Source: Malacoraja senta (taxonomy: Eukaryota). Taken from it: 64,000 bases of DNA. This document shows positions 31,431 to 59,112 of the stretch, piece after piece (the stretch's first letter is position 1; every line of letters starts with the position of its first letter). The stretch lies in the NCBI GenBank assembly GCA_038087875.1, contig JAXLNO010002359.1:62001-126000 (forward strand). The letters run 5' to 3'. A program made the position numbers and the translations under genes. Below the pieces are notes generated by a model. It made no database searches, was not told where the DNA came from, and was given only the letters and a program-made list of their open reading frames with translations.

Positions 31431-31644
31431 TTATCTTTAGAAACAAAATAGACACTTCCTCACTCTTACATTCAATGGCCTTAGCATTGAAGGCAAGCAT
31501 ACCATACGCCTTCTTCACTACCCTAACTACTTGTGCTGCCACTTTCCGTGAGCTATCAACGTGGACTACAAATGCACTGAAGATATGTGTCTCAAACTGG
31601 CTCAGTCTTAAATTCTATGTTATTTCCCACAGGGAATCCACAAA

Positions 31645-31732
31645 ATGAGGCCCAGGTTTTTCTGCAGCAGTTTGCCAGCTGGTTTGATGTTCGGTGTCTT
31701 TGTTTTCCTGCTTCGACCTGTTTCCACACAGA
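31645..31732 (+). CDS. Leader exon: signal peptide MRPRFFCSSLPAGLMFGVFVFLLRPVSTQ
   Basis: Acceptor tatttcccacag before 31633, ATG at 31645, hydrophobic core, phase-1 donor A|gtaagt. Confidence 0.75.
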
Positions 31733-34700
31733 GTAAGTGCTTTCTCTTCACCGGTCACAATCACGTTGCTTTACTTTATCATTGTCCGTGTAAACCCACA
31801 CCCCATTGTCAATCTCTCTTTCCTCTCCACATCCCACAAAACCACCCCATCCTTGCTGGGGCTCCATTTGTGACAGGGACATGATTAGCAACACAATGTT
31901 CCATGTTTCTATGGGAAAAAGATGGGGGAATTGCTCTATTAATCAGGGAAACTATCTTGTTGGCACTCAGAGCGGAGACTCTGGATGGTTTGTCCATTGA
32001 GGTGATATGGGTGAAAATAAGAAAGGTGAACGCAATTCAACGAAGTTGTATGAGACGTCCCCCAAGAGTGAGCAGGAAATAGAGGAACAGATGTGGACAC
32101 AGATTACTGAAAGATTACACAAATGGATGTCTTGGGGGTGACTAATGGTATATTCAATAGGATGTTTTGTAACAGTTGTGAATAGTGCAACGTCAGATAG
32201 GAATCCAAAATGGACCTTGTGTTGGGAAATGAGTCTGGCCAAGTGACTGATGTTTTAGTGAAAGAGTATTTTGGAGACAGTGAATACAACTGCATAAGTT
32301 TTAAGATTGGTTTGAATAGGGATAAGTCTGTTCTGTGCGACAAGACATTAATTTGAGTAAGGCAAATGACACCATTATTAGGCAGGAGCTTGGTAAGGTA
32401 CACTCAGAGCAGTTGTTATTAAGTTACTCCAAGTCTGAGATTGACAATTGTCTGAAGGTCAGTTGATCCAAACTCAAGACCGGCAAGTTCCAGTAAGGAG
32501 GAGAGATAAGACTGACAAAGTAAGGGAACCTGAGATGACCAAATAAATGTGTAAATTTGGTCAAAAATAGAAAGGAAACACATGCAAGGTTCAAGAATAT
32601 GGAAGCAGAGAGGGCCATTGAGGAATATAAAGCAAGGAGGAAAGAACTCAAGCGGGCGATTAGAAGGGAGAAAATAGGCCACAAAATGGCTGTGGTGATT
32701 TGGAGTAAAGAAAGTTCCAAGGCTTCTTATACTTACATTAAAATCAAGACGGTAGACAAGGAGAAGGTAAACAAGGATAAATGAAGGAAACTGAAACTGG
32801 AGTTAGGGGATGTAGGTGAGGTGTCAGATAACTCCAGGGATGAGAGGAGCAAGGGAAAAGAGGAAAAAATGAAATAAAATAAAATATGTCAGTAAAAAGC
32901 TGGGGTGGATTGTTTGGGGATTTGTTGCCTGAAAGTCAAGAATTCAATGTTCATACCATTAAGTTGTCAGATACCCAAGAGAAATATGAAGTGAGATTTC
33001 TTCAGTTTGCATGTGGCCTCACTGGCAATGGAGGAGGCCAAGGACAGAAAGATCAGTATGGGAATGGGAGTTAAAATGGTTTATTTGTTTAGAGAGAGAA
33101 TTCAGCGAATTAAAGAACTATGAGTCACATGACAACGGTAGGAAACTATTGGAAAGGATTCTTTGGGATAGAATTGACTCCCATTTGGAACAAAATAGAT
33201 GAGGGGATTAAAGACAGTAGGCATGACTTTTACGTGGCATTGTCTACAGTGATTTTAGTAAGGCACTTGGTAAAGTTCCCCATGATAGACGGATGCTGAA
33301 GATTAATAAGCATGGGATTAACATTGAATTGTTTGTCAGGATTCAGAATGGGCAGACTAGAAAACAGAGGAAAAGGTAATATTCAGGCAGGAAATCTGTG
33401 ACCAGTGGAGTTCTATATGGATCTCTGCCAGGACCACTGTCAGTCATGATTTATACAATGAATTTAAATGTAGATGGGTTGGTTAGTACATTTGCAGATG
33501 AGAACAAGATTGCTGCACTGTGCACAACGCTGTCAAAGTACCAAAGTATGTTGTAAAGTAATGAATGGGATATAGACCAGCTACAGAAGTGGGTGGACAA
33601 ATGACAGATCAAGTTTAATCCAAGCATCTGTGAGGTGTTGCACTTTGGGAGGTTGAATATAAGGGGAAGATATACAATTAACGGCAAGGCCCTTAACAGC
33701 ATTGATGTACAGAGGGACCTTGGGATCCAAGTCCCAAACTCTCTGAAAATGGTAATACAGGTAGATAGAGTGGCAAAGAAGGCAGATGGCATGCCTTTGG
33801 TTGGATCATTGGGTATAAGAGTCAGGAAGTCAGGATGTGATGCAGCTTTGTAGGACTTTGGTTAGGCCGGATTTCAAGCATTACATGCAGTTCTGGATGC
33901 CCCGAAAAGATGCAGAGGCTTTGGAGACAGGGCGGAGAAGGTTTACAAGAATTATGCCTGTGTTACTGGATATTAGCTACAGGGAGAGGTTGAATAGACT
34001 TGGATTGTTTTCTCTGGAATGTTTGACATTGAAGTGAGGCTTGATAGAATTCTACCAAATTATGAGCGGCAAGGTCAATGTAGACAGTCAGAATCTTTTC
34101 CCCAGGATGGATATATCAAATACAAGAGGGCATGGGGGGCTTTTGGGTGAGAGAGGCAAAGTGTGAAGGAGATGTGAAGGACAAGTATTTTACAGTGGTG
34201 AGTGGCTGGAACATGCTGCTGGTGGTGATGGAGGGAGATGTGTCAATGGGCTTTAAGAGACTTTTGGATAGGCACATGGACATGCAGGGAATGGAGAGAT
34301 ATGGATTATGTGTAGGCAGATAAGAGTTGGTCGTGGCATTATGCTCGACATAGACCTTGTGGGCCGAGGGGCTTGTTCCTGTTCTGAACTGTTCTATGTT
34401 GTAAATCACTGTGGAATGAGGAGCAGGCAGGGAGGCAGGAGCATGTTTATTCTGTTCCAGGTCTGTCCGACAAGGGCCGGGGATGCGGTGTGTACAGGAT
34501 CGGCCTGATCTCCACCCACACCAGGAAACCCCGTCACAGGGAACACCGGCTGGAGACCCGACACAAACGCCCTTCCACCTCCGTCTTTCTCCCACTCACT
34601 CTTCTCATGTCATGAAGTATCCCTGGATCAGGCCAGGTTATTCCAGCCAGCCATCTATTCACAAACTGTCCGTCTCACTGGAGGTTCTGTGGGATATCAA

Positions 34701-37700
34701 AACATTCTGGAAATAAATGAAATTCAAAATTAATAATTACAGACATGGAGTGGAGGAAATGTGCTTAAAATATTAATTGCTACATTTTTCCTATTTCCAA
34801 CAGAAATCAGAAATCAGATTTATTTCTTGGATAATGGAGGCGACATTGTGTTAAAAGGACCGGACAATCCTGGGAGTGACACTGTCGTCTGGGAATGGGA
34901 ACCACACTCAGGGCCGGGAAAACAGACAGTGGTAACTCTCCGCATCCAGGTCAGGGGCGTGTGGAGCAAACAGTGGGACAATGGCTGGGGAAACGCAGAC
35001 AAGACCCAGCAGGTGGATGTGGATCTCCGTACTGGTAATCTGGCAATAAAAAAACCCACATTTAAATGGTCAGGATTGTTCACTTTGACCGAAACACATC
35101 CGAGGAACCAGATCCTGGAACGATATGAAATATATGGGATCAAAGGTGAGTGGGCGAGACACGGATCAACAATATGTTTCTCTGTAAATAATGTCACGTG
35201 TAATGATGAAATATGGCGGGAATTGTGAGACTACTTCCACCCGATGAATCTCCCAATGAAACAATTGGGGGAAAGATTTGTCTTCATTGATTCTGTGGGC
35301 CTGGGGTGAGATTGTCGAGTGATACTGCTGCTCAATGTTACCCAGTGAACCAGGTCCATGCCTCACTTGGTTGAGATCCCAGAGGAAGTCCTTCATCTGT
35401 GGAACTTACACTGGTGGGAGAGTTCCCACCTTGAGGGCGGTCGGGGGAGACATGACAGGGACAAATGGAGAAACGTATCAATCCAGTTACATCTAAACGT
35501 TGTTACCATTCACTGGTCAGAGTGTTGCCGGTTGCACCAGCAGTGTCACGGTGAACAGCCGGCATTTACCTGTGTGAATATGAACAGCTTCAGGACTTCC
35601 ACCCATGCGTTTCACAACGAGGAATTCCACAACTTGCTGACAGTTCTTGCGGTGAATCTGCCAGCGCTCCCCTTCACTTCTCCACGTGGAGACCAGGACT
35701 GGAGCAGGAATATGCTGATATTCCCCGACACTGGCACTGGGAAAACTGCTCCCAGATCCGGTGCCTGCAGGGGTGGACACTCTTCAGGGATCAAAACTAA
35801 TCGTTATTGTAGAATTAGTCTCTTTCATGATAAAAAAAAATGAAATATTAATTATTAATAAATGTGTTTACTTCCAAAAGTTGGTGCCACTCAGAACCAT
35901 TCCAACAGCGTGGGAGCTTTAGCAGAGGACGAACACGGCCTTTGCCTCCTGTAGATAATTCTCCACAGGTGTAAAGTGATTGGGATTTGTTCATTGCTCT
36001 AACGTTTGCCGAGATACAGTGAATGAGGTTGGATCCAACTACTTTGATCTTCATGTTTTCCCCAGGGAAATCTCCATTGCAGAATATTCTAGGCTGCAGG
36101 AGTACGTGCTGAGGGACACACTGAAGATCAGTTGCAGACAAAGCAAAAACATTGTGGAATAGAACTACAGTCCATGGACCTTCTGCCACCAGTCCCCGCC
36201 GAGCTAAATCTAATGTACAAACCTCTGAAACACTTGAATTGGTATAATCTCAGGATGCAGCATGAGTGTCAAGAGTGTTATGTACACAAAATGTGTGAAC
36301 ACTGTCAAAGTGAGGAACAATCACACTATGTCTGTGTAGTCTGGACAATATCAAATTCAGATCTAGATTCATATTAGTTCATTGTCATATACATTTGGGT
36401 AAAACACATTCATTGTTCAGATAAAGTAAATTATAATAAAAGGTACATTAAAAAATGCAACAAAAGGAAAACAGTAGAATGGTGCAGAGATTGCAGTGCA
36501 GTCTGAAGTAATGCAACATAAAACTAACGTTTATGAAAATGCCCCAAGGGATGATGAGTGTTTGTGGCTCTGGGCTTGGACTAGCTGGAGTTTAGAAGAA
36601 TGAGGGGCGGGTCTAGGTTTTCAGTTGAGGTGAGATTGAGGCCAGTCATTGGACTTGTACAAACCACTACTCACTCTGAATCTCATTGATCTGTTTTTCA
36701 CAGTTGAGGCAAGTCCACAGAGGACTCTGCTGGGCAGTGACGTCACACTCAGCTGCACCATCTCCAGACTCTCAGATACAGTCAGTCTTCACTGGAGACC
36801 CATGGACTCATCCCAGCAGTACAGAAACAACACTGATCAGATCCGCCTGGATAACACGGTCTATCTGATGGTTCAACACGTTACAGTGGAGGATGGGAAG
36901 TATGTGTGTGATGTGCAGGAAAAAGGAAACATTGTTCACGCAAGTAACGGAGATTTTACTGTAAACGACAGTAAGTGTAAACACCTCCCATTGGATATCA
37001 AGTAGACACTTGTATCACAGTGCTTCTTGTAATATTATGTGTGCGCCCTGTGAAGAACTGTGGCAGTGACCAACTGCTCTCCAGTATAAAATGCTGCAAT
37101 GATCAGGGTGAAGTTTACAGAAAGTCTCTCTGTGGAGCAGCTGCCTGCTTGTCTCTGTGTGACAGACACACAGCACAGGAGGGGGATGTCTTTCTGTAAC
37201 CATTGTTCAGTCAAGTATTTTGTCAGTTTAGTGTGGGGAATTACAGACCAGTTAGTCTAACATTGGTAGTGGGGAAACTCCTAAGGTCAGTTATTAAAAA
37301 TGGGATAGCAGCACATTTGGAAAGTGGTGAAATCATTGGACAAAGTCAGCATGGATTTATGAAAGGTAAATCATGCCTGACGAATCTTATAGAATTTTTC
37401 GAGGATGTAACTAGTAGAGTGGATAAGGGAGAACCAGTGGATGTGTTATATCTGGACTTTCAGAATGTTTCGACAAGGTCTCACATTAAAGATTAGTATA
37501 CAAACTTAAAGCACACGGTATTGGGGGTTCAGTATTGATGTGGATAGAGAACTGGATGGCAGACAGTAAGCAAAGAGTAGGAGTAAACGGGTCCTTTTCA
37601 GAATGGCCGGCAGTGACTAGTGGGGTACCGCAAGGCTCAGTGCTGGGACCCCAGCTATTTACAATATATATTAATGATTTGGATGAGGAAATTGAATGCA

Positions 37701-40700
37701 ACATCTCAAAGTTTGCGGATGACACGAAGCTGGGGGGCAGTGTTAGCTGTGAGGAGGATGCTAGGAGGGTGCTAGGTGACTTGGATAGGTTGGGTGAGTG
37801 GGCAAATGCATGGCAGATGCAGTATAATGTGGATAAATGTGAGGTAATCCACTTTGCTGGCAAAAACAGGAAAGTAGACTATCTGAATGGTGGCCGATTA
37901 GGAAAAGGGGAGATGCAGCGAGACCTGGGTGTCTTGGTAGACCAGTCATTGAAATTAGGCATGCAGGTGCAGCAGGCAGTGAAGAAAGCGAATGGTATGT
38001 TAGCATTCATAGCAAAAGGATTTGAGTATAGGAGCAGGGAGGTTCTACTGCAGTTGTACAGAGCCTTGGTGAGACCACATCTGGAGTATTGCGTACCGTT
38101 TTGGTCTCCTAATCTGAGGAAAGACATTCTTGCCAAAGAGGGAGTACAGAGAAGGTTCACCAGACTGTTTCCTGGGATGGCAGGACTTTCATATGAAGAA
38201 AGACTGGATAGACTCGGCTTGTACTCGCTAGAATTTAGAAGATTGAGGGGGGATCTTATAGAATCTTACAACATTCTTAAGGGGTTAGACAGGCTAGATG
38301 CAGGAAGATTGTTCCCTATGTTGGGGAAGTCCAGAACAAGGGGTCTCAGTTTAAGGATAAGGGGGATGTCTGAGAAAAACATTTTTTTTCACACAGAGGG
38401 TGGTGAATCTGTGGAATTATCTGCCACAGAGGTAGTTGTGGCCAGTTCATTGGCTATATTTAAGAGGGAGTTAGATGTGGCCCTTGTGGCTAAAGGTATC
38501 GGGGGTATGGAGAGAAGGCAGGTACAGGATACTGAGTTGAATGATCAGCCATGGTCATATTGAATGGCGATGCAGGCTCGAAGGGCCGAATGGCCTACTC
38601 CTGCAACTATTTTCTATGTTTCTATCAATGCTCCAGTATCTGAGACTGAGATACTGATAAAGGACTCACGTCAAAGTGTCAGATAGAAAGTGTAGTCACC
38701 ATGACAACCACGAGCACTTGCTGCTCACACTCACACTGGGGGTCCCGGCTCACACATCAGCACTGAACAATAATCCATCCCCTCTCCCCTCACTGACCCT
38801 TCTCTCCGAGTCTGGTGTTGCTTGAAGTGATTCCAACTGCTGCAGACTCGGGTTTCGGATCAGCATTCAGCTGGGAGCAGGACCCGGGAACAGGGAAGGA
38901 CAGGGAATCAATGGGTGTGAATGGGAGAGGGATGGTGGGAATAATGGGAATGAAGGGACGGGAAGACCCGACCCACTTGAAGTGCCAACCTGTCCGGGTC
39001 AGTCCCCACGCAGGCATCCTCTGGGCTGCTTCTGTCCGCAGCCTGAACCTGCACCACCTCCTGCAGACAGACTGACAGAGACATTCACCCCCCAGACCGC
39101 TCTCGGGAGTCTCCGGGAGGTTTCATTCCATCCCGGGAGATTCCCGGACAGTCCGGGTGTGGGGGCGAACCTAATGTAGAAATGTAGAGTGGAATATCCA
39201 AACTTCACTGCAATTTGCTGACGTACATGACATTGTATTTTATAAAGATCTGATGAGTTTAGTGCGGCATTCATGAAACATGTTACATTTGAAACTTGAT
39301 CAGCTGAACAAAACACCACAAATATTTAAAAGAATACGGTTGAGAATCTCTGTATGGCACGGTAACTGTAATACTGAAAGGAGTTATCCTCTGTCTCTCT
39401 GATACAGATTTATCTAATGGGAGATACACACTTTACCGCTCCAGCACAGATCACAGTGAACTTCACCTGGTTTGCGATAATAGTTATGGTGATGGCTATT
39501 CCAGTGCTCAGTGGACCTGGGCACCTCATCACCTTCAACCACTGAAAGTAATAGCATCTGCAGACCGTTCTCAGCCCATCAATGTCAATGGGACCGACTT
39601 CGGGAATCGACTGGTGACCTCAGGGAAACCCTTCGATGGCAAGGATTTCAGTGTGAGAATTGTCCCCGTTGTGTTTCAAGATGCCGGAGTTTACGCATGT
39701 CATCTGGAATCAAATCCATTTCCCACCATTGACCTAATCACAGTGAAAGGTAGGAGACAGAATGTTGCCACTGTGTTTACTGCTGAACATTGTTTAAAAT
39801 GTAAACAACCTGTTTGTTTCCACAGTCACAGCTGAACCGTCTGATGCAGTGACTGAGGGAGACACCGTTACCCTGACCTGCTCTGTGTCTCACGTCATTG
39901 GGTCAATGAGACTGGTTTGGATCAATGGCGATGGCAAAAGTGTTGGAGAAAAGTCACTGACTGTGGAAGAGAAATCACAGAGTCTGGTTATTCAGAAAGC
40001 TGAGAGAGGCAGAGGGAACTGGAGATGTGGTTTGTTTCATCAAGACCTGCCCCGGCTTTTTGTCCCGTACTATCTGGAGCCCCGTGGTAAGTGATAAGGG
40101 TTTGTTCTTCATACTTAGAGTCATGATTCAGTTTTGATGTCGCTTATTGATCCTGAAATTTGAGTGGAATATTTTCTTCCAGTTTGAGTGGTCTAACTGT
40201 TATGAATACCGAATTCTCAAATTTCAAATAACACATCCCGAACCCTACTTCTCCCCCCACCCTTCATTGTGCACGCATTTATCCCACCACCCAGTTATCC
40301 TATTCTCTTCCCTTCCTCTTTCAACTCATTTCCCACCCCTTCCAATTGCAGAGTTTTCCTTTTATGTTCTTGCTCCACTTCCACCCATATCCCTCCCTCT
40401 GCTACTGATCTGACTGTAGATCAGTCAGTATTAGTTGACCTGATCTATGTCATGTTTTACTGCATGCCGCTGTGCACTCAAACAGTCATCATATTATCTA
40501 GTCTGTTAGTCCAGCCTCTAGTTAGATTCGTTGCTGAACTTGAGCTTACAACACCTAAGTATTTGAGCTCTGTGTGTGTACTATAACAAACAACTTCTTC
40601 TTGTGTTAGCATTTGAGTATAGTGGCAGGGAGGTTCTTCTGCACCCGTACAGGGTCTTGGTGAGACCACACCTGGAGTATTGCATACAGTTTTGGTCTCC

Positions 40701-43700
40701 AAATCTGAGGAAAGACATCCTTGCCATAGAGGGAGTACAGAGAAGGTTCACCAGACTGATTCCTGGGATGTCAGGACTTTCATATGAAGAAAGACTGGAT
40801 AGACTGGGCTGTACTCGCTTGAATTTAGAAGATTGAGGGGAGATCTTATAGAAACGTACAAAATTCTTAAGGGGTTGGATAGGCTAGATGCAGGAAGATT
40901 GTTCCCGATGTTGGGGAAGTCCAGGACAAGGGGTCACAGTTTAAGGATAAAGGGGAAATCCTTTAGGACCGAGATGAGAAAAACCTTTTTCACACAGTGA
41001 GTGATGAATTTCTGGAACTCTCTGCCACTGAAGGTAGGTGAGGCCAGCTCATTGGCTATATTTAAGAGGGAGTTAGATGTGGTCCTTGTGGTTAAAGGGA
41101 TCAGGGGTATGGAGAGGAGGCAGGTACAGGATACTGAGTTGGATGATCAGCCATGATCATATTGAATGGCGGTGCAGGCTCGCAGGGCCGAATGGCCTAC
41201 TCCTGCACCTATTTTCTATGTTTCTATGTATGGATCCTGTTATTACACATGTTTATACTGACAACCTTTTGTCTCCATTTCACCCCTCCATTTTGTCATT
41301 ATCTCACCATTCCCCACCTGTATCCACCTATCACTCACCATGCTTTGTCTCATGCCTACATCCCTTCCCCAGTTGTCACTCTCCCATTCCATCAGTCTGA
41401 GAATGCATCCTGACATGAAACGTCATCAATCCATTCCCTCCACAGATGCTGCCTGAGTTCAACTCCATTGAGTTTCTCCAACACTTTGCGTTTGATCAAC
41501 ATTCCACAATCTGCAGTTTCTTGTGTCTCCATGTAGACCCACTGGTCAGCGTGGATAGATTGCTGCAGAGGGCCTGTTTCCATGCTGTTCCATGATGATG
41601 AATTATAACGTACAACTTAGTAAAGATTAATTCTCTGCAATATTGCTAATGACAAGGTCAGTGAAAAATTGTTGACAACATTTACACATGTGTTCTCGTT
41701 TCCTACAGGAAGTGGACATTATCTGTACTTTTTCCATCAGCAAGGCAACTTTGTATTGAAAGGACCAGACAGTCCTGGAAATGGCCCCATTGACTTGGAA
41801 TGGAGCCCACACTCAGGGCAACAAACCACAAAGCGATTGGCCACTTTCCGCAGAGAAGATCGACAGTGGGCTGTACGATGGAGTGATGAGTACAATCAAA
41901 TACCAGGCATCTCCCAGAGGATGCATGCGGACTGGGGTACCCTTAATCTGAGGATCAGGATGCCCACATTCAAACTTGCAGGACTGTTCACCTGGAATCA
42001 GACACAGCACGCTGGGAAAATCCTGAGACAGTGGGAACTATTTGGGATTAAAGGTAATAGAGTCATAGTGTCACACAGCACTGAAACAGGCCCTTTGGCC
42101 CAATTCATCCATACTGACCAACTACCCATCTAAACATCCCATTTGCCCTCATTTGGCCCATATCCCTTTAACCTTTTTTCCATATACCTGTTTAAATGTA
42201 TTTTAAGTGTTGTTGTACCTGCATCAAACACTTCCTCTGCTCGATATTTCCATAAAGTATGTTCATGTACCACTCTCTTTGTCAAAAAACTGCCCCCTAA
42301 TATTAAAGGGTATATCTAATCTGCCCCTCTCACCTTAAACATGTACTAACTAGTTTTTGATTCCCCAACCCTGGAAAAAAGACCATGTGCGTTTACTATA
42401 GATATGCCTCTCATGATTTTATTCCCTCACATATAATCTCTGTTAAAGACACCCAAGAAATATAATCAGTCTGAAGAAGGGTCTCAACCTGAAACATCAC
42501 CTATCTATGTTCTCTAGAGTTCAAAGGTCTTTTATTGTCACGTGTACCAATTAAGAGGCAGTGATATTCATATTACCAGACCTGCTGAATTACTCCTGCA
42601 CTTTATGTCCTTTTATATATTAACCAGCATCTGCACTTCTGTGTTTCTACTATACTAAAAACATCCCTACCTGGAAGTGTTGATGTGGGAGATGAGGGGG
42701 CGAGGGGGACAGGTGGTCACTACCAGGAAGTGTTGATGTGGGAGACGAGGGGGCGAAGGGGGACAGGTGGTCACTACCAGGAAGTGTTGATGTGGGAGAC
42801 GAGGGGGGCGAGAAGGACAGGTGGTCACTACCAGGAAGTGTTGATGTGGGAGACGAGGGGGCGAGTGGGACAGGTGGTCACTACCTGGAAGTGTTGATGT
42901 GGGAGACGAGGGGCGAGGGGGACAGGTGGTCACTACCTGGAAGTGTTGATGTGGGAGACGAGGGGGCGAGGGGGACAGGTGGTCACTACCAGGAAGTGTT
43001 GATGTGGGAGACGAGGGGGACGAGGGGGACAGGTAGTCACTACCAGGAAGTGTTGATGACATCACTGAGCACGGCAGCTCAATATTCAGCCGAATGTCTG
43101 TCTGCAGGGAAAAGACAATTCTGCCCACAGTAGTTCAGAAAGCTGTTGGTGAACTGAACCACATGTGTCTGTTTCCACAGTTGAGGCCGACTCACCGAGG
43201 CCAGTAATGGGCAGTGACATCACCCTCAGCTGTACCATCTCCAGACTCCCAGATACCATCAGTCTTCACTGGAAACCAAGAGGCTCATCTCAGCAGAACA
43301 GGAGGAACAACACTGATCAGATCCGTCTGAACAACGCCGTCTATCTGATGATCCAACACATTGGAGCAGGAAATCCCAATCTGTACACATGGGAAGTGCA
43401 GGAAAATGGCTCCATTGTTCTCACTGGAGACACCAATGTTGAAGTGGATCAGGGTGAGTCCAAAGCTGCCTTGCAGCAGGTATTAAATAGTTCTTGATAT
43501 CAAACTGTTCCACATGTTGTATAGTGAGCACTGACTCCACCCGTGGGCTTCCACACTGCAGGATGTGGACATTGCCTTTATCCTGGGACATGGTGTAAAT
43601 ACAAAATGGTGGCACTAAGATTGATGGAGCCACACAGGAGAACCAAGGGATTCATTTCAGTTCACCTGCATGAATCAAAGAGAATAATATCCAGTGATGG

Positions 43701-46700
43701 AAATAACATCTAGTTTTCAGTGTATAACAGAACAGGAAAATATGAACTAATTCAAGTATAAATGCAGAGGAAATATCAGAATCAGAATCACATTATATTG
43801 GCCACGTAATCATACACAAGGAATTTGACAGTGCTTTGCTCGCATATGGTAAAAACACGATATACAGCAGACAATTAAAAATAAAACATTATAATTTAAA
43901 CATGTGAAAATAAAGTACCGGAGTAAAAAGAGGCTACCGACATTTGGCTGTTGAGTAGAGCTACGGCTCGTGGGAAGAAGTTGTTTTTATGTCTGGCTGT
44001 GGCAGCTTTGACAGTCAGGACTCACCTGCCAGTGGGAAGTGATTCAAAGAGTTTGTGGCCAGGGTGAGAGGGGTCAGAGATGATCTTGCCCGCTCGCTTC
44101 CTGGCCCTTGCAGTGTACAGTTCATCAATGGAGGGAAGGTTGCAGCCAATAACCTTCTCAGCTGAAATGACGATTCGCTGCAGCCTCCAGGTATCGTGCT
44201 TGGTGGCTGAGCCAAACCAGACCATGATGGAGAAGGTGAGGACAGACTCTATGATGGTAGTGTAAAACTGGACCATCATTGCCTGTGGCAGATTGTGTTT
44301 CCTCAGCTGCCGCAGGAAGTACATCCTCTGTTGGGACTTTTTGACTGTGGAGTCGATGGTGGCGTCCCAATTAAGGTTGCTGGAGATGATGATTCCGAAG
44401 AAATTAAATGACTCCACAGTTGTGACTGTGGTGTTGTTAAAGATGAGTGGGGGGAGGGGAGGGGGGGCTCTACAATCAGGAGGGGAGGATTGAGTCTACA
44501 GTCAATTCCACTGTCTTAAGAGCACTGAGCTTCAGGTTGTTGCGATGTCAACAGGACACCAGCTTTATGATTAGGGTGACTTGGACATCTTGCTGAAGTA
44601 AGCATGCAGGTACAGCAGGCAATGGTGAAAGCAAATGGCATGTTGGCCTTCATAGCGAGATGATTTGAGTATAGGAGCAAAGAGATCCTACTGCAGTTGT
44701 ACGGGGCCCTGGTGAGACCGCACCTGGAGTATTGTTTGCAGTTTTGGTCCCCTAGTTTGAGAAAGGACATTCTTGCTATCGAGGGAGTGCAGCATAGGTT
44801 CACCAGGTTAATTCCTGGAATGGCGGACTGACATATGATGAAAGAATGGATCGACTGGGTATATATTCACTGAAAATTAGAAGGATGAGAAGGAATCTTA
44901 TAGAAACGTATAAAATTATTAAGGGATTGGGCAGGCTAGATGCAGGAAAAATGTTCCCCATGTTGGGCGAGTCCAGAACCAGGGGACCCAGCTGACATCC
45001 CAGAGCCGGGGGTTTGTCCTTGTGGAGACTCACAACATTGTATCTCGGCGTGTGTGGAAATCTAATTCTTTGTTCCCTGTCCCTCTCTTGCAGGTTTACA
45101 TAACAAGACGTACACAGTTTATCGCTCAGTCACAGATCACAGTGAACTCGACCTGATTTGTGAAGCTTCTCCTGAGCTCAGTGAAACCAAATGGACTTGG
45201 AGATCACCACGTTTCCAGAATCAAGAGAAGGAAATAGCTTCTTCTCACTGGTCTGAGCCGATACATGTCAACAGGAGCTACTTTGGGAATCGACTGGAAA
45301 CCACAGAGGGAAATGTGAATGGCAGGAATTGCCATGTGAGGATTGTCCGCGTGCAGTTTGCAGATGCTGGAGTTTACACATGTTCCACGGGATCAAATAT
45401 ATATGTGAACATTGACCTAATCACAGTTACAGGTAGGAGACTGGATGTTACTACTTTCAAGAATTAAGTAACTGGTGTAGAGTTTCTAATCTGAGTACAG
45501 ACTGCAATGTCAGCAGAAATTCCCAAGTTTGAAGAATTATTTTACCTCCAGAGCTTCCTCTTCAACTTATTTGTATTTTGCTGAACCCAAACTCTGCCCT
45601 AAACCAACATTATTGGGAAGCACATCAAATGTTATTTTCATTTATTTTGCTGAAAACACATTTTTTATACATAAGAGAGGGAATATGATGAAATGTGATT
45701 CAGAAAGGTGCAAATGAGCTTCCATCGAAAATATTTAAAAAATCATTCAAATTCTCTTAACACGTTCCCGAAGTTTCTTTGACCCCAAACGACCCATCCT
45801 AATTTTTGAAGGCTCACTGGAGGCTTAAAACTGAGTGTATTTTGTGGAATTTATCGATTCATATTTACCTGGATGAGTGTTGTGGCCAAAACTGTGGCCA
45901 GAGGCAATGATGTGGGCATTGGTTGCTCTTTGTATAATTAGTTCAAAACTGTTGTGAATGATTATGGAAAAGACACTTGGAGAGGTACATGGATGGGAAA
46001 GGTGCAGAGGGATATGGGCCAAATGTGGGAACATATTTTAGATGGAGCATCTTGGCCGGCATGGATGAGTTGGGCTGAATGGACCGAATTGTTTCATGCT
46101 GTATGACTATGCCTCTAACTCTTGTTGTGTAATATAATTTTCCACACTTAGAACGCCAGATACTGGTGTCAAAGTACTGAGAAAAACACAACACAATCCA
46201 GACAAAATTCATTGTTTTACGATTTTCTTCTTTCCACAGTCACAACTGAACCATCTGGCGCAGTGACTGAGGGAAGAAACGTTACCCTGACCTGCTCTGT
46301 GTCTCATGTCACTGAGTCACTGAGACTGGTTTGGATCAATGATGAAGGCAAAGTTGTAGAGGAGAAAAATCTCATGCTAACAAAGCAGGAGAACAATTCT
46401 TTGCAGCTGATTATTGCAATAGCTGATGGAGTAAGAAGGAAATGGACAACATGTGGTTTGTCTCATCAAAGCACAACCAAGGTTTTCATTCCATATAATC
46501 TGCAGGTGAACAGTAAGTTTCTTAGCTTCTGCTCTTCGTTATCTCGACACAGAGTTCTTGTCACGTTGCTATTCTTTTTGTTTAATTGTATGTTGTCCCT
46601 GGTGTGTGTAGGATAGTGTTAGTCTGTGGGAATCGCTGGTCGGTGTGAACTCGGCGAGCCGAAGGGCCTGTTTCCGTGCTGTATCTCTAAACTAAACTAA

Positions 46701-52700: not shown

Positions 52701-55700
52701 CGCTACCCCACCTCCTTTTCCTTTCTCTCTATCCCTCCTGAATATTGAATATCCCTGGATGTTCAGCTCCCAGCCTTGGTCCCCCTGGAGCCATGTCTCT
52801 GTGATCCCAACTATATCATGGTCATTAAAGCTATCTGCACATTCAACTCATCCACCTTATTACGAATGCTGCTTGCATTGGGACACAAAGCCTTCAGGCT
52901 TGTTTTTACAACACTCTTACCCCTTATACAATTATGTTGAAAAATGGCCCTTTTTGATTTTTGCCCTGGATTTGTCTGCCTGCCACTTTTACTTTTCACC
53001 TTGCTACCTATTGCTTCTACCTTCATTTTACACCCCTCTGTCACCCTGCTCACATATTTAAGAAACCCACCACCTCTTATTCTCTGTTTATTATCTTTTT
53101 CTTCTTTCCCCCCTACATGTTGGGTCTGAGTGCTTCCCTTCTCTGCCTCCTGCCTCACACACTGTCTACTAGCTTTCTCTATTTGAGTCCCTCCCCCCAA
53201 CCGTTCTAGTTTAAAGGCTCCCCAGTAGCCTTTGCAAATCTCCCCGCCAGGATATTGGTCCCCCTCGGGTTCAAGTGCAACCCGTCCTTTTAGTACAGGT
53301 CACACCTTCCCCAAAAGAGGTTCCAATGATTTTTGAATGATGTCCATTTATTCTACAAATGTGAACTCTGTGTTTATTATTTTGACAGAGAATGAACCTT
53401 TTATATACATCATTGTTGGAATTATCGGGAGTCTGGCTCTTCTCATCGTCATTTTACTGGCAGTGGTGTGGTGTCAAAGAAAGCGCAAGCCTACAGGTAA
53501 AGTACATGAAGACATGCTTAATGCAGCACAGATTACCCAAATTATCAATGACAATGTTATCTTTGTTACAGGGAGAAAATAACAATATATTTTGGACAGG
53601 AAAAGTGTCTGATTGTGCTTATGTTGTTGAGAAATTGATTTCAGACTTTTTGTGGTCAATTAAAGCATTATTTATGCAATGTGGATTGTCTACCTGTCTA
53701 CCTGCGTTGCCATGAGGAGTCTGCTGTATGATTTCAGGTGCTGTTCTGCAATGATCTGACCACGTGGTGATTGTGTCACCATCCCCTGTGTAAACCATTA
53801 TCAAATAAACATGCCAGAAGTTGAAGTATAGCTAGTGTAGTCATGTAGAAAATATGGTCTCCAATTTGCCCTCAACATGTTCCTATTTACTGAGGGATAA
53901 ATATTGGCCAGGAAACCAGGAGACCAAGGTATCTCCACTGCACTTTGGTGGTTCAAACTTAAAGTGAAAACTTTGCCTTGTGTACCATCCTAATATGGTC
54001 ATAATTTAGGGAACACTGTGTTTCCATGGACTCTGATTTTATCCACATGGTCTTATCCCACCATTAAATGTCTCTGACGTACATCTGAAGCCATGTTCCT
54101 GGTCATTCTGGTGGATCTCATTATTAATTGGGTACAGTTTAAACACTGGATTGCTGCTTCTTTAAAATCAAGCCGGATTAAAGTCTTAATCAGAAAATAA
54201 TACTTATTTTCCAGAAATTAATGTGACCCCAGTACCTGAGATGAGCCATGTTGCTGAATATATGTCTGTGAGTAGGAAGACAAAGCAAGAAGGTAAATAG
54301 ATGACTCAGTCAATGAATCTCTAGTTGTAGAGGTGTTGTATTTGATGAAACAACCTATTTCACAGTTTTCTAACAAGAATGTGAGGAAGAGAACCTCAAG
54401 CACACAAACTAATTTATCAATTCAACAGTCTCTCTTGTGTCAATTCACCCCTCAGTCCCAATCTTCCTCATCCAACTGCAGGTCTTACTCTGCATTGGTC
54501 AATTGACTAATTTTCACTGGACTATCATGGTCAACCCATGAATGTTGAGACATCACCATGAACAACATATTCACACTCCTAATTTATTGTTGATCCTGAT
54601 TAACAGCTTGGTTAGTGGCTCTCTAAAGAATGGACAACACTTGCCCTTTCAAAAGTCACCATCCCTTTCACAAAATATCATCTAGCATTAAATGCCTCCA
54701 ATTCACTTTGCCACTAGGTCAGATTTTATTCTAAAGTGAAAATAACAACATTTCAGAATGGTTTGAGCATCATTAATAGATGGCGGATAGGTGATGTTTC
54801 GGATCGAGACCCTTCTTTTGAGTCTGAAGAAGGGTCACGACCCGAAACATCACCTATACATGTCCTCCAGAGATGCTGCCTGACCTGCAGAGGTACTCCA
54901 GCACTTTGTGTCCCTTTGTGTATTAACCAGCATCTGCAGTTCTTTGTTTCTACCTAAGACAGAATCAGAATCAGATTTTATTCGCCAAGGATGTTTTGCA
55001 ACATACGAGGAATTTCACTGGCCAGGTCAGTCATACAATTAAAAAGCAAGACACAAAAACACATTTTAACATGAACATCCACCACTGTGACTCCTACACA
55101 TTCCTCACTGTGATGGAAGGCGAAATAAAATTCAAGTCCTTCACTTGTGTACTTCTTCGGTCGGGGGACTCGAGCCATCACCCTGGTGGTCAAATGGTGG
55201 ACAGTATTGTTTTTGCCAGAATTTAGACCACATTTCTGATGAATCTGATGAACAACAGAGAAATCTTTCTTGAAAAATCTGAAGGAACCTTTCAATAAAT
55301 CAGACATTGCCCATGTTTTAGAGATTAGAGATTAGAGATTCCTTTATTTGTCATTCAGACCTTTCGGTCTGAACGAAATTTCGTTGCCTGCAGTCATACA
55401 TATAATAATAAATGACAAAACACACAATAAACACAAATTAACATCCACCACAGTGAGTTCACCAGGCACCTCCTCACTGTGATGGAGGCAATAGTCTTAA
55501 AGTCTCTGTCTCTTCCCGCTTTCTTCTCCCTCTGCGCTGAGGCGATCCAGGCTTCTGATGCTGTGACCCCGCCGGGCGACGGTAAGCCAGTCCAGCGGCC
55601 GAATCCGTGCTCCGCGACGGGCCGGCTCAAACTCCGCGGCCCGGGGTGGTCGAATTTAATGAGAAAAATATAAATTCCTCACCTTGTTCCACAGTATGGA

Positions 55701-58229
55701 TCAATTGTATTCCACTGTGTTCCACTGTAAAGGGATCGATTGTATTCATATATTGTCTTTCTGCTGATGCAACAAAAGCTTTTCCCTGAACCTCGGCACA
55801 CATGACAATAAACTAAACTGAACCTCAGCTGATCATATCTCCCCATATTCCTTGATCTTAGTCCACATATGACTGGTCTCTAGTTTGTGTTTTGCAGTCT
55901 TTTTTTCCACTAACCTGTGGTCTTTGTAATTTATGCTTCATTTATGTGTTGTGTTGCCTTAGTCAAAATGCCTCTGATGCTGCTGCAGGCAACATTTTCA
56001 TTGTGCCTGTACCTCGCCATTGTTGTGTATCTGTCAATAAATTCAACAACTACGAAAATGTACTGAATGATTTGGCTCCAGACAAATGTGTGGTAGAGAA
56101 TGTAACAGATTCTTTGTTCTCCTCATCTTCATCCTTATTGTCTCTTGGCTTAAACCTTTACCCCTGGTCATGGTCTCCCCCAACAGGGAACATCTTCCTC
56201 CATCCAGACTGGTCTACCTGTTGGAATTTTCTATGTTTCCATGAGAACCATTGTCATTCTTCTAAACTCCACAAGCCAAATTAACTCAAATTCTCTTTGT
56301 AATTTCCACCATCCCAGGAAGAAGTCAAAACAAGGAGGTTAGGAGATGTGACTTTTCATGGAGGGTTTTTTCAAACTGCTGGATGTACTCTATGGGTCGA
56401 GCAGCATTTATGGAGGGAAAGCGATGATCAGCGTTTAGTATCGTGACCCTGCATTGACTTAAATCATCCCTTTTCAAATACAAATAAATTCTTTGTTTCC
56501 AACTTATTTCCACAGATACAGAAGAAGGTATTCATTATGGATCCATCTCCTTCCAGCCAAAAGCATCTGGTGGTAAAATGACTTTATTTAAATATGTTTT
56601 AAACTTTTATCACAGTGAGGATTATTGGCACTGAGTAGTCTGAAACCCTGCTGTCTTTGGCCACCTTACAACAGCATCAGGCATTCCTGGGATAAAGTCC
56701 CTCACTCTATCCGTCGACATGAAGTGGGAGTCAGCTGAGGCTCAGTTAGGAGTCCAACCTTCTCTGGGTGGGTTCAACCTCCCCAACCTTCTCCGTGTGT
56801 GTTCTGGTCCCCTAAACTACAGGGAGTGTGTTCTGGTCCCCTAAACTACAGGAAGTGTGTTCTGGTCCCCTAACCTACTCTAAGTGAGTTCTGGTCGCCT
56901 AGCCTACTCTGAATGGGTACAATAGCCACTCCAGAGATCCAACCAGTGACATCCAGGCTGCTGTTACAACACTGTTGTGCATTGTCGTTGGTGATGAGAA
57001 GTGAAACCAAGACACCATTTATGTCCATCTGAAGAACATTCTTCTACACAACTCCTGACTGAGCTAAAAGTGATCAGCGCAAACTTCCTTGAATTACAAA
57101 TTTTTGATATTGATTAGTAGGACTGGATGTTACAATCCCCTAAGTTTCTGCACCACAACTGACCCAATATTCTTGGGGGAGACCACGAGGTGATTTTGCT
57201 ACCAATCAGACACATCTTCAGTTGTGTACCTCAACATCACTGCGTGTTTCGGCCTTTTATCACAAGACACCCTCAGTCAAGGCAGGCCCACCGCAGGGTG
57301 ATCAGCCCTGGGTGTGTGTCTTATGGTTAGCCTCTAGATGGTCGCGTGGCAGCCCAGACAGCATCTTTTCTCTTCAGCCACAGCCAGTGACTGCTCCATT
57401 CTGCTTTTATCCTTCCATCTTCCTCTCTACCGCTGACTGTGGCTGGTTGGGCTCTGGACTCGTGTCCGTTGGTGGGACAGTTATTGGTTGAGCTTCGCCT
57501 GGGGTGCTGATACCCTGTGGACTGTGGTGGTTAACCTGCCACTGGGCTTCACTCCACTGATTTGGCCTACCTCTTAGGTCAATGTGAGGCCCCTCACCAA
57601 GCTCTCCCAGGCACTTTTCCCTGCCTTGGTGGATCTTGAGACCCTTCTCTGATATTATCTTATCCCAGCCACAGATGCAGCTTCATAGCTTATGTCCTGC
57701 CCGGGCTGCTGCTCTGTCAATTGCTGTGTTAATTCACTTATTCATAGTCGATTCCTTCCATAGCAATATAAGGGTGTCTTGTTCATGCTGACCATTCCTG
57801 CAGCTCACTGTAAATGCAGAGGTATGAGCATACAGATGACAGATGGGTTTTCTGGAATTCTATGTCTTGTTGATCTACTGTCAGGAAGAGCAAAATGTAG
57901 TAAGCTTTAGACTTTCATATTCCATTTGTCGTTTCCTTTGTCAACATAATCCACCAGTGTCATTTTTAATTGTGATGTTTGCATTTATTACAGGCAGCAG
58001 CGATAATACACTGTCCTCCAATCAAGCATCAGGCACTGTAAGTATATTGATTCTTGTTGATGAAATCCCAGATCGTACAAGTATGAATTAAAGCTGTAAT
58101 CTGTTTACTGATCTAAACAGCGACAACAGCAACGGTCTTAAATACAATTGGTATTTATTTCTCTTTCAGAACCTTGTTTCTTCAAAGGAAGATGAGTCTG
58201 TCATCTATGCTGAAACAGTAAAATCATAA
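31645..58229 (+). CDS. Eight-Ig-domain, ITIM-bearing type I receptor (CD4/LAG-3-like architecture, doubled); 14 coding exons, 958 aa
   Basis: join(31645-31732,34804-35145,36704-36970,39408-39749,39826-40086,41709-42053,43181-43453,45094-45432,46240-46512,53389-53496,54215-54292,56516-56572,57994-58037,58170-58229) = 2877 nt, no internal stop, all introns GT-AG, phase 1 except the last (phase 0). Confidence 0.88.
31860..34400 (+). mobile_element. Old, heavily decayed CR1/HER1-type LINE in intron 1
   Basis: Degenerate APE and RT remnants (cattgatgtacagagggaccttggg, CRTLVRP) and a gggccgaggggcttgttcctg tail. Confidence 0.75.
34804..35145 (+). CDS. Exon D1: cysteine-less V-like Ig domain
   Basis: tttttcctatttccaacag| ... 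G|gtgagt; IVLKGP (B strand), WEW (C), NLAIKKP (E), SGLFTL (F). Confidence 0.85.
35850..36140 (+). mobile_element. Tx1/L1-like LINE 3' remnant in intron 2
   Basis: Reads SRLQEYVLRDTLKI near 36090-36130. Confidence 0.5.
36704..36970 (+). CDS. Exon D2: C2-like Ig domain
   Basis: tttttcacag| VEASPQRTLLGSDVTLSC..LHW..YLMV..GKYVC..FTVND A|gtaagt. Confidence 0.92.
37210..38625 (+). mobile_element. CR1 3' part in intron 3
   Basis: ORFs 37203-37496 and 37535-38563 (NYRPVSL, PQGSVLGP, FADDTKL); ttttctatgtttctat tail. Confidence 0.95.
39408..39749 (+). CDS. Exon D3: canonical V-set Ig domain
   Basis: ctctctgatacag| ..LHLVC..QWTW..NRL..FSVRI..DAGVYAC..IDLITVK G|gtagga. Confidence 0.92.
39826..40086 (+). 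CDS. Exon D4: C2 Ig domain with WxC motif
   Basis: tttgtttccacag| VTAEPSDAVTEGDTVTLTC..LVW..SLVI..GNWRC..YYLEPR G|gtaagt. Confidence 0.93.
40600..41230 (+). mobile_element. CR1 3' fragment in intron 5
   Basis: RPHLEYCIQFWSP and the same tail. Confidence 0.92.
41709..42053 (+). CDS. Exon D5: cysteine-less V-like domain, paralogous to D1
   Basis: tttcctacag| ..FVLKGPDSPG..EWSPHSG..NLRIRMPTFKLAGLFTW..FGIK G|gtaata. Confidence 0.87.
42667..43058. repeat. G-rich minisatellite, about 53-bp unit, about 7.4 copies
   Basis: Unit ctaccaggaagtgttgatgtgggagacgagggggcgagggggacaggtggtca. Confidence 0.95.
43181..43453 (+). CDS. Exon D6: C2-like domain, paralogous to D2, F-strand Cys replaced by Trp
   Basis: gtttccacag| VEADSPRPVMGSDITLSC..LHW..YLMI..LYTW..VEVDQ G|gtgagt. 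Confidence 0.92.
43777..44515 (-). mobile_element. Rex1/Babar-type LINE 3' fragment
   Basis: ORF 44022-44417 (KKSQQRMYFLRQLRK..IESVLTFSIMVWFG..DPSHPGH) and (tctgat)n tail. Confidence 0.85.
44570..44990 (+). mobile_element. CR1 RT-end fragment
   Basis: gcaaatggcatgttggccttc, gagaccgcacctggagtattg, gagtccagaaccagggg. Confidence 0.85.
45094..45432 (+). CDS. Exon D7: canonical V-set domain, paralogous to D3 (absent from the ORF track)
   Basis: ccctctcttgcag| ..LDLIC..KWTW..NRL..NCHVRI..DAGVYTC..IDLITVT G|gtagga. Confidence 0.92.
46240..46512 (+). CDS. Exon D8: C2 domain, paralogous to D4
   Basis: ttcttctttccacag| VTTEPSGAVTEGRNVTLTC..LVW..KWTTC..YNLQVN A|gtaagt. Confidence 0.92.
47458..47749 (-). 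mobile_element. HE1-like tRNA-derived SINE
   Basis: Minus strand: gcggcacggtggcgcagcggtag head, box-B-like gggctcgatccc, (ctaaa)n tail; a shorter + strand tail lies at about 46600-46700. Confidence 0.85.
48437..49090 (-). mobile_element. CR1 3' fragment (subfamily of 6410-10370)
   Basis: ORF 48540-49091 on - ending GRWD*. Confidence 0.93.
50010..53330 (-). mobile_element. Long CR1 copy (ORF1 end, APE, RT, tail), broken
   Basis: ORFs 51909-52700 (YRPPNS, GDFN), 50966-51391, 50554-51039, 50111-50341. Confidence 0.95.
53389..53496 (+). CDS. Transmembrane exon
   Basis: tttattattttgacag| NEPFIYIIVGIIGSLALLIVILLAVVWCQRKRKPT G|gtaaag: uncharged helix followed by a basic stop-transfer cluster. Confidence 0.9.
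54215..54292 (+). CDS. Cytoplasmic exon 1 (AEYMSV tyrosine motif)
   Basis: cttattttccag| EINVTPVPEMSHVAEYMSVSRKTKQE G|gtaaat; 78 nt, phase 1-1. Confidence 0.75.
54787..54955. mobile_element. Penelope terminal repeat with an inverted 31-bp head and hammerhead core
   Basis: 54787-54817 is the reverse complement of 54827-54857 with few mismatches; CTGAAGA at 54824. Confidence 0.75.
56516..56572 (+). CDS. Cytoplasmic exon 2 (canonical ITIM IHYGSI)
   Basis: ttatttccacag| DTEEGIHYGSISFQPKASG G|gtaaaa; 57 nt, phase 1-1. Confidence 0.8.
57994..58037 (+). CDS. Cytoplasmic exon 3 (Ser-rich spacer)
   Basis: gcatttattacag| GSSDNTLSSNQASGT |gtaagt; phase 1-0. Confidence 0.78.
58170..58229 (+). CDS. Terminal coding exon (VIYAETV, ITIM/ITSM-like)
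   Basis: tttatttctctttcag| NLVSSKEDESVIYAETVKS*. Confidence 0.8.
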   Translation, partial: NLVSSKEDESVIYAETVKS

Positions 58230-58386
58230 ACATGAATACTGTGAAGAGAGTGGAAAGTGAAGGCTTGGACTTTGACAAGTGCAACGTTGCAATTTTTGGA
58301 ATTGAATTTTTTACTTTACAATTTCTACATACTTTCACGAATGTACATCCCGAGTTATCAAAATCATCACATTCATCTTCTATATT

Positions 58387-58392
58387 AATAAA
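58387..58392 (+). terminator. Candidate polyadenylation signal of the Ig receptor gene
   Basis: First AATAAA after the stop codon, about 160 nt downstream. Confidence 0.5.
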
Positions 58393-58719
58393 ACTAAGAT
58401 CTTGACCACTTTCTGACTTCCTGTTTCGTGATTTCTGAAAGAACGCCGCCACTTACGGCCGTTATTTTTGGCCACCTCGCTCACAGTCCCCCTCCGCTGA
58501 GCTGGACCAGAGGCTTTTTCCCATCGATGAAAAATCAGAGAGTTGTTCATGTTTTAGTATTGGTTGTGAGTGTGTGTGTGTGTGTGTCTGTGTGTGTGTT
58601 TTCAGAAAATGTATTGGTGTAAAGTGTTTGCAAATTTGGAGACTTTAAACGTTTGAATCATTCGGTTTCCACACTATGTTTACCACGTTCTGAAGTTACT
58701 TGGCATTTTAGTCTTGGTT

Positions 58720-59112
58720 GTGTGTGTGTGTGAGTCAGTGTGTGAGTGACTGTGTGTGTGTGAGTGACTGTGTGTGTGTGTGACTGTGTGTGTGTTTGAC
58801 TATGTGTGTGTGTGACTGTGTGTGTGTGAGTGAGTCTGTGTGTGAGAGTCTGTGTGAGTCTGTGTGTGTGTCTGTGTGTGTGTCTGTGTGAGTGAGTCTG
58901 TGTTTGTGTAAGTGAGTCTGTGTGTGTGTGTGTGTGAGTGAGAGTCTGTGTTTGTGTGTCTGTGTGTATGCGTGCGTGAGTGAGAGTGCGTGCGTGTCTG
59001 AGATTGTGTGTGTGTGTCTGAGATTGCGCGCGTGTCTAAGAGTGCGTGCGTGTCTGAGTGCGTGTGTGTCTGAGTGCGTGTGTGTCTGAGAGTGTGTGTG
59101 TGTGTGTGTGTA
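58720..59112. repeat. Compound (TG)n / tgtgag / tctgag microsatellite
   Basis: Direct inspection. Confidence 0.97.

Follow-up and report, generated by a model that had tools for sequence, protein, structure and literature searches.

We analysed a stretch of 64,000 nucleotides from the skate Malacoraja senta (GenBank assembly GCA_038087875.1, contig JAXLNO010002359.1, forward-strand positions 62,001 to 126,000; this whole stretch is called the window below) and found in it a gene that is probably intact and encodes a 958-amino-acid (aa) type I membrane glycoprotein, a member of an old modular paired-receptor family that bears an immunoreceptor tyrosine-based inhibitory motif (ITIM) and has a CD4/LAG-3-like fold. 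In a lineage of its own, it joins a CD4/LAG-3-type ectodomain to an ITIM tail of the CEACAM or Siglec style, and homology searches identify the gene as one member of a large, uncharacterised, modular multigene family. A sequence-only reading of the same DNA had proposed a cartilaginous-fish lineage of inhibitory receptors, related to CD4 and LAG-3 and distinct from both, with an ectodomain twice as long; this interpretation is partly supported by the present analysis.

The receptor gene and its cytoplasmic tail

Rebuilding the gene model from the sequence yielded 14 exons on the + strand between 31645 and 58229, which splice into a stop-free coding sequence (CDS) of exactly 958 aa, the length given in the sequence-only reading for its 14 exons. 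Every internal exon border is of the AG...GT type with compatible phases, all 14 exons are open, and no frameshift interrupts the approximately 2.9 kb of CDS. Each of the eight immunoglobulin (Ig) domains (D1 to D8) occupies one exon, and all Ig exons as well as the transmembrane (TM) exon are of phase 1-1. The encoded type I membrane protein comprises a leader, eight Ig domains, a TM segment and a tail of 82 aa, which bears out the earlier layout of a leader, two V-C2-V-C2 units, a TM segment and a tail of 80–90 aa. In the following list, domain type a denotes a V domain without cysteine, b a C2 domain carrying YxC, c a disulfide-bonded V domain and d a C2 domain carrying WxC.

Exon 1, 31645–31732, + strand: signal peptide with the start codon (29 aa and one further base); donor A|GTAAGT in phase 1
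Exon 2 (D1), 34804–35145, + strand: Cys-less V-set, type a, membrane-distal
Exon 3 (D2), 36704–36970, + strand: C2, type b, canonical B–F cysteine pair (YVC); Pfam ig 1.5e-5
Exon 4 (D3), 39408–39749, + strand: V-set, type c, with disulfide; Pfam V-set 6e-6
Exon 5 (D4), 39826–40086, + strand: C2, type d, F-strand WRC (WxC motif); Pfam Ig_3/ig
Exon 6 (D5), 41709–42053, + strand: second Cys-less V domain, type a
Exon 7 (D6), 43181–43453, + strand: C2, type b, F-strand Cys replaced by Trp (YTW); Pfam ig/Ig_3
Exon 8 (D7), 45094–45432, + strand: V-set, type c; Pfam V-set 1.5e-6
Exon 9 (D8), 46240–46512, + strand: C2, type d, WTTC, i.e. WxC with a one-residue insertion; Pfam ig/Ig_3
Exon 10 (TM), 53389–53496, + strand: TM segment without charge, then basic stop-transfer CQRKRK
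Exon 11 (tail), 54215–54292, + strand: AEYMSV; 77–88% identity to Rhinoraja and A. radiata tails
Exon 12 (tail), 56516–56572, + strand: IHYGSI, the sole canonical ITIM
Exon 13 (tail), 57994–58037, + strand: Ser/Asn-rich spacer GSSDNTLSSNQASGT, restores the reading phase
Exon 14 (tail), 58170–58229, + strand: VIYAETV, degenerate form of the family-terminal ITIM VIYAQI; stop codon 58227–58229

Comparison with predicted proteins of other species agrees with this model along its whole length. The leader in exon 1 and its junction with D1 match A. radiata XP_032868270 (P0005) at 93% identity, the D4–D5 junction is found in A. radiata XP_032885417 (P0014) and in full-length models, and all junctions, including that between D8 and the TM exon, are reproduced in RefSeq models of relatives. 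For D4–D5 and D8–TM, the two junctions singled out in the sequence-only reading, this agreement is with predictions and not with transcripts of this copy. The four tail exons follow one another in the same order in A. radiata XP_032868266 (P0028) and in a Rhinoraja protein (P0099), both of which also contain the exon 13 peptide GSSDNTLSSNQASGT. Since the exon at 57994–58037 corrects the phase, the strong acceptor at 58170 becomes usable and the CDS reaches 958 aa; a 13-exon model with the weak acceptor at 58192 (936 aa) was dropped in view of this exon and of the peptide order in P0028 and P0099. An extra Ig exon at 35323–35800 (reading AGIYLCEY) was also rejected, having no usable phase-1 splice sites and matching only the read-through end of the short A. 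radiata model P0006. As a separate observation, intronic positions 35555–35797 (+ strand, frame 1) show conservation when set against the C-terminal end of A. radiata XP_032885416. This 243-aa model (leader, D1, read-through) may represent either a short isoform that is secreted or an error of annotation, and in the skate window these positions lack good splice sites.

Pfam recognised Ig-type domains in six of the eight domain exons (V-set in D3 and D7, ig/Ig_3 in D2, D4, D6 and D8). D1 and D5 contain no cysteine and gave neither a Pfam match nor a sequence match in the PDB, where a profile of the Cys-less V domains returned only a marginal Nav-beta4 match; the AlphaFold2 (AF2) model of the window's own D1 has a V-set fold, with a predicted local distance difference test (pLDDT) score of 87.9. 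The two halves of the ectodomain are paralogous, with identities of 39% for D1 and D5, 62% for D2 and D6, 50% for D3 and D7 and 55% for D4 and D8 (E 1e-20 to 1e-28). Using hhalign, type a pairs with type c and type b with type d, each at E of about 2e-5, as a duplication from V-C2 to V-C2-V-C2 would predict. No paralogous Ig exons were found elsewhere in the 64-kb window.

The tail holds all three motifs named in the sequence-only reading, AEYMSV, IHYGSI and VIYAETV. In a regular-expression scan of its 82 aa, only IHYGSI (residues 911–916) fitted the ITIM consensus (I/V/L/S)xYxx(I/L/V), while AEYMSV and VIYAETV did not, so the several ITIMs read earlier reduce to one. This ITIM lies downstream of a TM segment without any charged residue, in support of the ITIM-bearing type I receptor that had been proposed. 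The same scan of the tail found no immunoreceptor tyrosine-based switch motif (ITSM), no activation motif of the immunoreceptor tyrosine-based type (ITAM) and no YxN, Cx(C/H) or (F/Y)xxL(D/E). A Lys-containing TM exon of the activating type (GYLxVK) was found nowhere in the window, and a juxtamembrane LYSNxNEIQ exon neither between the TM exon and the first tail exon nor in the rest of the window.

A modular family with two kinds of tail

When 1.8 billion cluster representatives were searched with a profile built from D1 and D5, 44 proteins were returned; cluster look-ups together with a second search with a Mobula homologue then revealed a family that is large and occurs in sharks, rays and skates, and the domain types were mapped on about 100 proteins. 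Nearly all members are called 'uncharacterized protein' in RefSeq; exceptional names are 'obscurin-like' for one UniProt entry from nurse shark and one from Pristiophorus, 'vascular cell adhesion protein 1-like' for a single Pristiophorus entry and 'hypothetical protein' for two catshark/bamboo-shark entries. The gene had been described as unannotated-looking, which needs correction in that relatives do exist in RefSeq, if only under the uninformative name. A description of the receptor family was not found in the searchable literature, in line with the earlier statement that no described molecule was recognised.

The 958-aa model is colinear with the Pristis protein P0061 over residues 1–958 at 66% identity and with two Leucoraja proteins (LOC129701496/495) over its own first 752 and 840 residues at 77% and 75% identity. 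Because the DNA flanking the exons also aligns with the Leucoraja locus at 81–90% identity, the window gene is, judged by this alignment, an orthologue or close paralogue of LOC129701496.

Across the mapped proteins the plan is strictly modular, (a-b-c-d)n, with n of one to four cassettes. Proteins with one cassette have about 500–600 aa, those with two, the commonest form, about 990 aa, while three cassettes occur in Heptranchias (1404 aa) and four in Scyliorhinus and Mustelus (about 1710 aa). The 12–16 Ig domains predicted for P0001, P0055 and P0057 (Scyliorhinus, Mustelus, Heptranchias) could belong to real long receptors or to fused tandem genes. In the cassette tree, first units and later units fall into separate clades with support of 100 and 98 in the Shimodaira–Hasegawa-like approximate likelihood ratio test (SH-aLRT), and as both clades hold sharks and batoids, the doubling predates the shark–batoid split. 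The domains differ in conservation: the mean pairwise identity within the family is lowest for D1 (50%) and highest for D5 (71%) and D6 (77%). The Trp in place of the F-strand Cys of D6 is found in nearly all species, and the W and C of WxC are invariant in d-type domains (n=36).

Two kinds of tail are attached to these ectodomains. Long tails are attached to a TM segment without charge and contain LYSNxNEIQ, (A/S)EY(M/A)xV, the canonical ITIM (I/L)HY(G/A)S(I/V) and the terminal canonical ITIM VIYAQI, and it is to this type that the window gene belongs. Short tails are joined to a TM segment in which a Lys is conserved (GYLLVK), as in P0004, P0010, P0012, P0023, P0029, P0049, P0054, P0078 (an eight-Ig form) and P0098. 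Because long-tailed ITIM members and short-tailed members with Lys in the TM segment co-occur, the family bears the signature of paired activating and inhibitory receptors, as far as tail types indicate. With KIR, LILR, SIRP, CEACAM, Siglec and the teleost LITR, NITR and DICP families it shares near-identical ectodomains placed on either an ITIM tail or a charged-TM short tail, as well as the membrane-distal position of the most variable domain. The layout of ITIM, spacer of about 30 aa and terminal xIYxxI resembles the tails of CEACAM1, Siglecs and CD22. In contrast, the order of Cys-less V, C2, V and WxC-C2 domains and the growth by whole cassettes occur in none of these paired families.

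Lower-scoring homologues were found in Callorhinchus (a chimaera), sturgeons, paddlefish, bichir, bowfin and eel. These homologues share the WEW...PH..G Cys-less V domain and the WxC C2 domain, one sturgeon protein carries the same inhibitory tail motifs, and the GYLxVK TM segment is also present in sturgeon and bowfin proteins (P0037, P0039); both kinds of tail are represented in sturgeon and bowfin. By this sequence comparison the family arose before cartilaginous fishes separated from ray-finned ones and is no invention of the former; the cartilaginous-fish lineage of the sequence-only reading is thus not confined to that group. As an observation on its own, the lysine motif GYLxVK is kept from sharks to bowfin (elasmobranch P0004, P0010, P0023 and P0078; P0037 and P0039 of sturgeon and bowfin), which suggests one specific, ancient signalling adaptor.

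Relation to CD4 and LAG-3, and competing origins

CD4 and LAG-3 are characterised by a V-C2-V-C2 ectodomain, F-strand WxC motifs in D2 and D4, a strand that continues from G of the V domain to A of the C2 domain, tail motifs Cx(C/H) for CD4 and (F/Y)xxL(D/E) for LAG-3, and a conserved genomic region (PMC10768021). It is further established that D1 of both is split by an intron (see the legend to Figure 2 in PMC10768021), and sharks possess CD4 and LAG-3 genes separate from this family, the LAG-3 being bona fide (PMC10768021). The skate protein has the V-C2-V-C2 ectodomain twice over and WxC in the C2 domain equivalent to D4 (WRC in its own D4), and the continuous G-to-A strand is present in the model of a Leucoraja homologue. 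WxC is absent from the C2 domain equivalent to D2, the first V domain has no internal intron, and neither tail motif is present.

At the sequence level, a profile of the four-domain cassette (71 sequences) searched against the PDB placed LAG-3 at the top (E 9e-10), with the V-domain end and the whole WxC C2 domain lying on the end of D1 and on D2 of LAG-3; the d-type domain D4 aligns with LAG-3 D2 over its full length. Taken by itself, the sequence evidence for a relation to CD4 and LAG-3 is only suggestive. The structural comparison was made with an AF2 model of Leucoraja P0082:31-434, which is 73% identical to the first cassette of the window protein and reached a pLDDT of 88 and a predicted template modelling (pTM) score of 0.86. 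DSSP strands 101–116 and 306–321 cross both V–C2 junctions of this model, in which each V-C2 pair is thereby shown as a predicted rigid rod with a continuous G-to-A strand, the construction of CD4 and LAG-3. Foldseek returned LAG-3 and CD4 as the top 6 matches in the PDB and as the top 17 among the Swiss-Prot models of the AlphaFold database, followed there by Ly9, and VIA-align gave a Z of 17.6 for the cassette against CD4. As rigid bodies, the c-d pair fits rat CD4 D3D4 at 2.6 Å over 169 residues and the a-b pair CD4 D1D2 at 3.4 Å over 170 residues, the two-domain fits to CD4 D1D2/D3D4 spanning 2.6–3.9 Å.

Compared with LAG-3, its best match in both the PDB profile search and Foldseek, the skate protein shares the V-C2-V-C2 order, WxC in the C2 F strand with a similar G-strand pattern, the continuous G/A strand at the V–C2 junctions and, on the skate side as a prediction, inhibition mediated by a tail motif of the tyrosine type. 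It differs in its doubling to eight domains, in a first V domain without a disulfide and without the 'extra loop', in the restriction of WxC to one C2 type, in unsplit V exons, in a canonical ITIM instead of (F/Y)xxL(D/E), and in its membership of a multigene family with activating-type partners. CD4 shares with the cassette the four-domain rod–hinge–rod, the best VIA-align Z and one of two V domains without a disulfide, whereas the V domain that lacks cysteines comes first in the skate cassette but third (D3) in CD4, and the skate protein has eight domains, an ITIM tail and no LCK-binding Cx(C/H) motif. The doubled CD4/LAG-3-like ectodomain of the sequence-only reading is therefore upheld by two cassettes, whose Leucoraja counterpart returns LAG-3 and CD4 first in fold searches, and the gene is indeed neither CD4 nor LAG-3, as its unsplit V exons and the absence of both tail motifs indicate. 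Its kinship with them stands as far as profile and fold make them the closest matches of the cassette, and is less secure in that WxC is confined to one C2 type and D1 alone is CD2/SLAM-like.

Several observations weigh against an intact CD4/LAG-3-like inhibitory receptor. The sequence link to LAG-3 is weak, with CEA reaching an about equal total score (E 1.7e-9) and a single stretch of PD-L1 exceeding LAG-3 in the profile search (32 versus 23 bits), and the four-domain structure model is that of a 73%-identical homologue and not of the window protein. D1 alone lies nearer to the V domains of the CD2/SLAM family (2B4, CD58) and also of nectin than to CD4 D1, and the b-type C2 domain has Y-x-C (YVC in the window's D2) or Y-T-W (D6) and never WxC in all species aligned. 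In this copy the juxtamembrane LYSN exon of the family is absent, the terminal ITIM is degenerate (VIYAETV versus VIYAQI), and D8, the most deviant domain, has a private insertion in WTTC. Support for the junctions comes from predicted models of relatives and not from transcripts, and what is said here of a ligand, of the expressing cells, of phosphorylation at the ITIM and of a recruited phosphatase is inferred.

The alternative that fares best, although we hold it to be rather doubtful, is that the family is a chondrichthyan and basal-fish expansion of G6F/G6F-like, in which the window gene would be a doubled, ITIM-bearing relative and no third lineage would exist. Teleost G6F-like is a thrombocyte receptor, and in the abstract of Ohashi et al. 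from 2010 it is reportedly called similar to CD4/LAG-3. For G6f-like, which was compared on the basis of its published description, an ectodomain of four Ig-like domains is reported, together with a single TM segment and, in the tail, an ITAM and a YxN that binds Grb2 (PMC3528668). The four-Ig unit, the occurrence in fishes, the conserved LYSNxNEIQ (YxN) of most family members and the tandem YxN with which sturgeon, paddlefish and bichir homologues end (IYDNVENIYEN) are all in its favour, and kinship is hinted at by this YSN of most tails and by the tandem YxN ends in sturgeon and bichir. The G6F-like combination of four Ig domains with YxN and an ITAM encoded by two exons is, however, not found with the window tail, which has an ITIM and neither YxN nor ITAM; the ectodomain is doubled, the gene belongs to a multigene family, an ITAM was seen in no family member examined, and human and mouse G6F lie outside the top 30 structural matches among Swiss-Prot models. 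Searches for named teleost relatives with a sturgeon homologue and a mixed alignment gave only uncharacterised basal-fish proteins and weak CD22-like matches. Teleost G6F-like may be a member or a sister of this family.

It is unlikely that this copy is an unexpressed or decaying paralogue whose open frame is a recent remnant. Such decay would account for the loss of the LYSN exon, the degenerate terminal ITIM, introns full of retroelements, the unique insertion in WxC of D8 and the low best identity of this domain to any relative (66%; D1 63%, D3 64%). On the other hand, none of the 14 exons is interrupted, their splice sites are canonical, and 2.9 kb of coding sequence run without a frameshift; both the central ITIM and the pattern of cysteines are retained. 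The VIYAET ending is also found in A. radiata P0028, so this change is common to both species and not a private decay.

Similarly, we give little credence to a generic or convergent likeness to CD4/LAG-3 in a family derived from receptors of the CD2/SLAM or CEACAM type. Their plan of an N-terminal Cys-less V domain, C2 domains and a tail with tyrosine motifs is indeed comparable, and in Ly9 (SLAMF3) the V-C2 unit is doubled as well. The window's D1 alone fits 2B4 best (TM-score 0.70–0.74), with CD58, CEACAM15 and SLAM also listed, the NTB-A V domain fits the a-type domain at 1.9 Å, Ly9 is the first match other than CD4 and LAG-3 among Swiss-Prot models, and CEA matches the family profile at E 1.7e-9; a 'CEACAM homolog' was moreover reported among little-skate expressed sequence tags in 2013 (PMC3628338). 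The whole cassette, however, ranks LAG-3 and CD4 first by three methods, with Ly9 below them, and the two-domain rigid-body fits go to CD4 D1D2/D3D4 and not to CD2, SLAM or CEACAM. The window tail has no ITSM (TxYxxV/I), the third domain is a disulfide-bonded V unlike that of CEACAM, and WxC is invariant in the d domain.

Least of all do we expect a cartilaginous-fish counterpart of the bony-fish DICPs, which were compared by description only: these MHC-linked receptors do have D1-D2 or D1a-D2a-D1b-D2b ectodomains in inhibitory, activating and secreted forms, so that an alternating two- or four-domain architecture and a mix of ITIM and charged-TM forms are in common, and homologues of the window gene do occur in bowfin, sturgeon and bichir, but DICP D1 and D2 keep C23 and C104, four-domain forms included (bioRxiv 10.1101/2021.06.11.448072), whereas the a-type domain (D1, D5) has neither, and bowfin activating DICPs are described with a TM Arg instead of the Lys in the conserved GYLxVK.

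Surroundings of the gene and its proposed role

The flanks and introns of the receptor gene contain retroelements of the long interspersed nuclear element (LINE) type, and otherwise the flanks hold only one open reading frame, of the THAP type; the Leucoraja locus compared with the window comprises this gene alone. A near-intact LINE ORF2 with endonuclease and reverse transcriptase lies at 15901–19713 on the + strand (Pfam Exo_endo_phos 1e-17, RVT_1 2e-38) and falls into two open stretches, of 782 and 488 aa, on either side of one stop near 18247; as this stop is the only interruption, the element may be young. Remnants are located at 7341–10085 on the + strand (endonuclease 7341–8294, reverse transcriptase 9018–10085) and at 1502–3061 on the - strand (reverse transcriptase-bearing). 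About 1 kb downstream of the receptor stop, a 101-aa open stretch at 59204–59506 (+ strand) encodes a THAP zinc finger (PF05485, E 1.5e-7), which may stem from a transposon or belong as an exon to a THAP gene of the host. Simple repeats comprise a CA/TG-rich microsatellite at 58661–59199 that reads THTHTH in several frames, a G+C-rich minisatellite at 60047–61400 whose repeats read as a recurring peptide (GC 0.56 versus about 0.43 elsewhere) and, in the D5–D6 intron at 42589–43130, a tandem repeat with units of the GHYQEVLMWETRG type in two frames.

For the receptor itself, we propose a model in which the variable, membrane-distal D1 would engage a ligand and a Src-family kinase would phosphorylate the ITIM tyrosine. 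SHP-1, SHP-2 or SHIP would then be recruited and signalling of ITAM-coupled receptors dampened, among them possibly the Lys-TM relatives, which may signal through an adaptor of the DAP12/FcR-gamma type.

For this single gene the outcome is more modest: its annotation as an inhibitory member of the family is well supported. Beyond it, we tentatively put forward a wider proposal, which has a real chance of being correct without our calling it probable: the family would be a third branch, hitherto undescribed, within the CD4/LAG-3 superfamily, a branch that pre-dates the split of cartilaginous and bony fishes, grew by cassettes to 4, 8, 12 and 16 Ig domains, serves as paired innate receptors and not as a T-cell co-receptor, presents D1 as its ligand face and was lost or became unrecognisable in most teleosts and tetrapods. 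CD4 and LAG-3 are usually seen as a two-member family tied to major histocompatibility complex class II and T cells, and this picture would be altered by a large and ancient sister group built from the same V-C2 module, in the form of a paired multigene family with up to 16 Ig domains. Such a group would raise the questions of which ligand the ancestor of CD4 and LAG-3 had, whether G6F-like is a surviving member and what the partner of the GYLxVK TM motif is. To our knowledge, few families of germline-encoded inhibitory and activating Ig receptors have been described in cartilaginous fishes, for which the family would, if the proposal is true, provide a candidate set of receptors of the natural killer or myeloid type.

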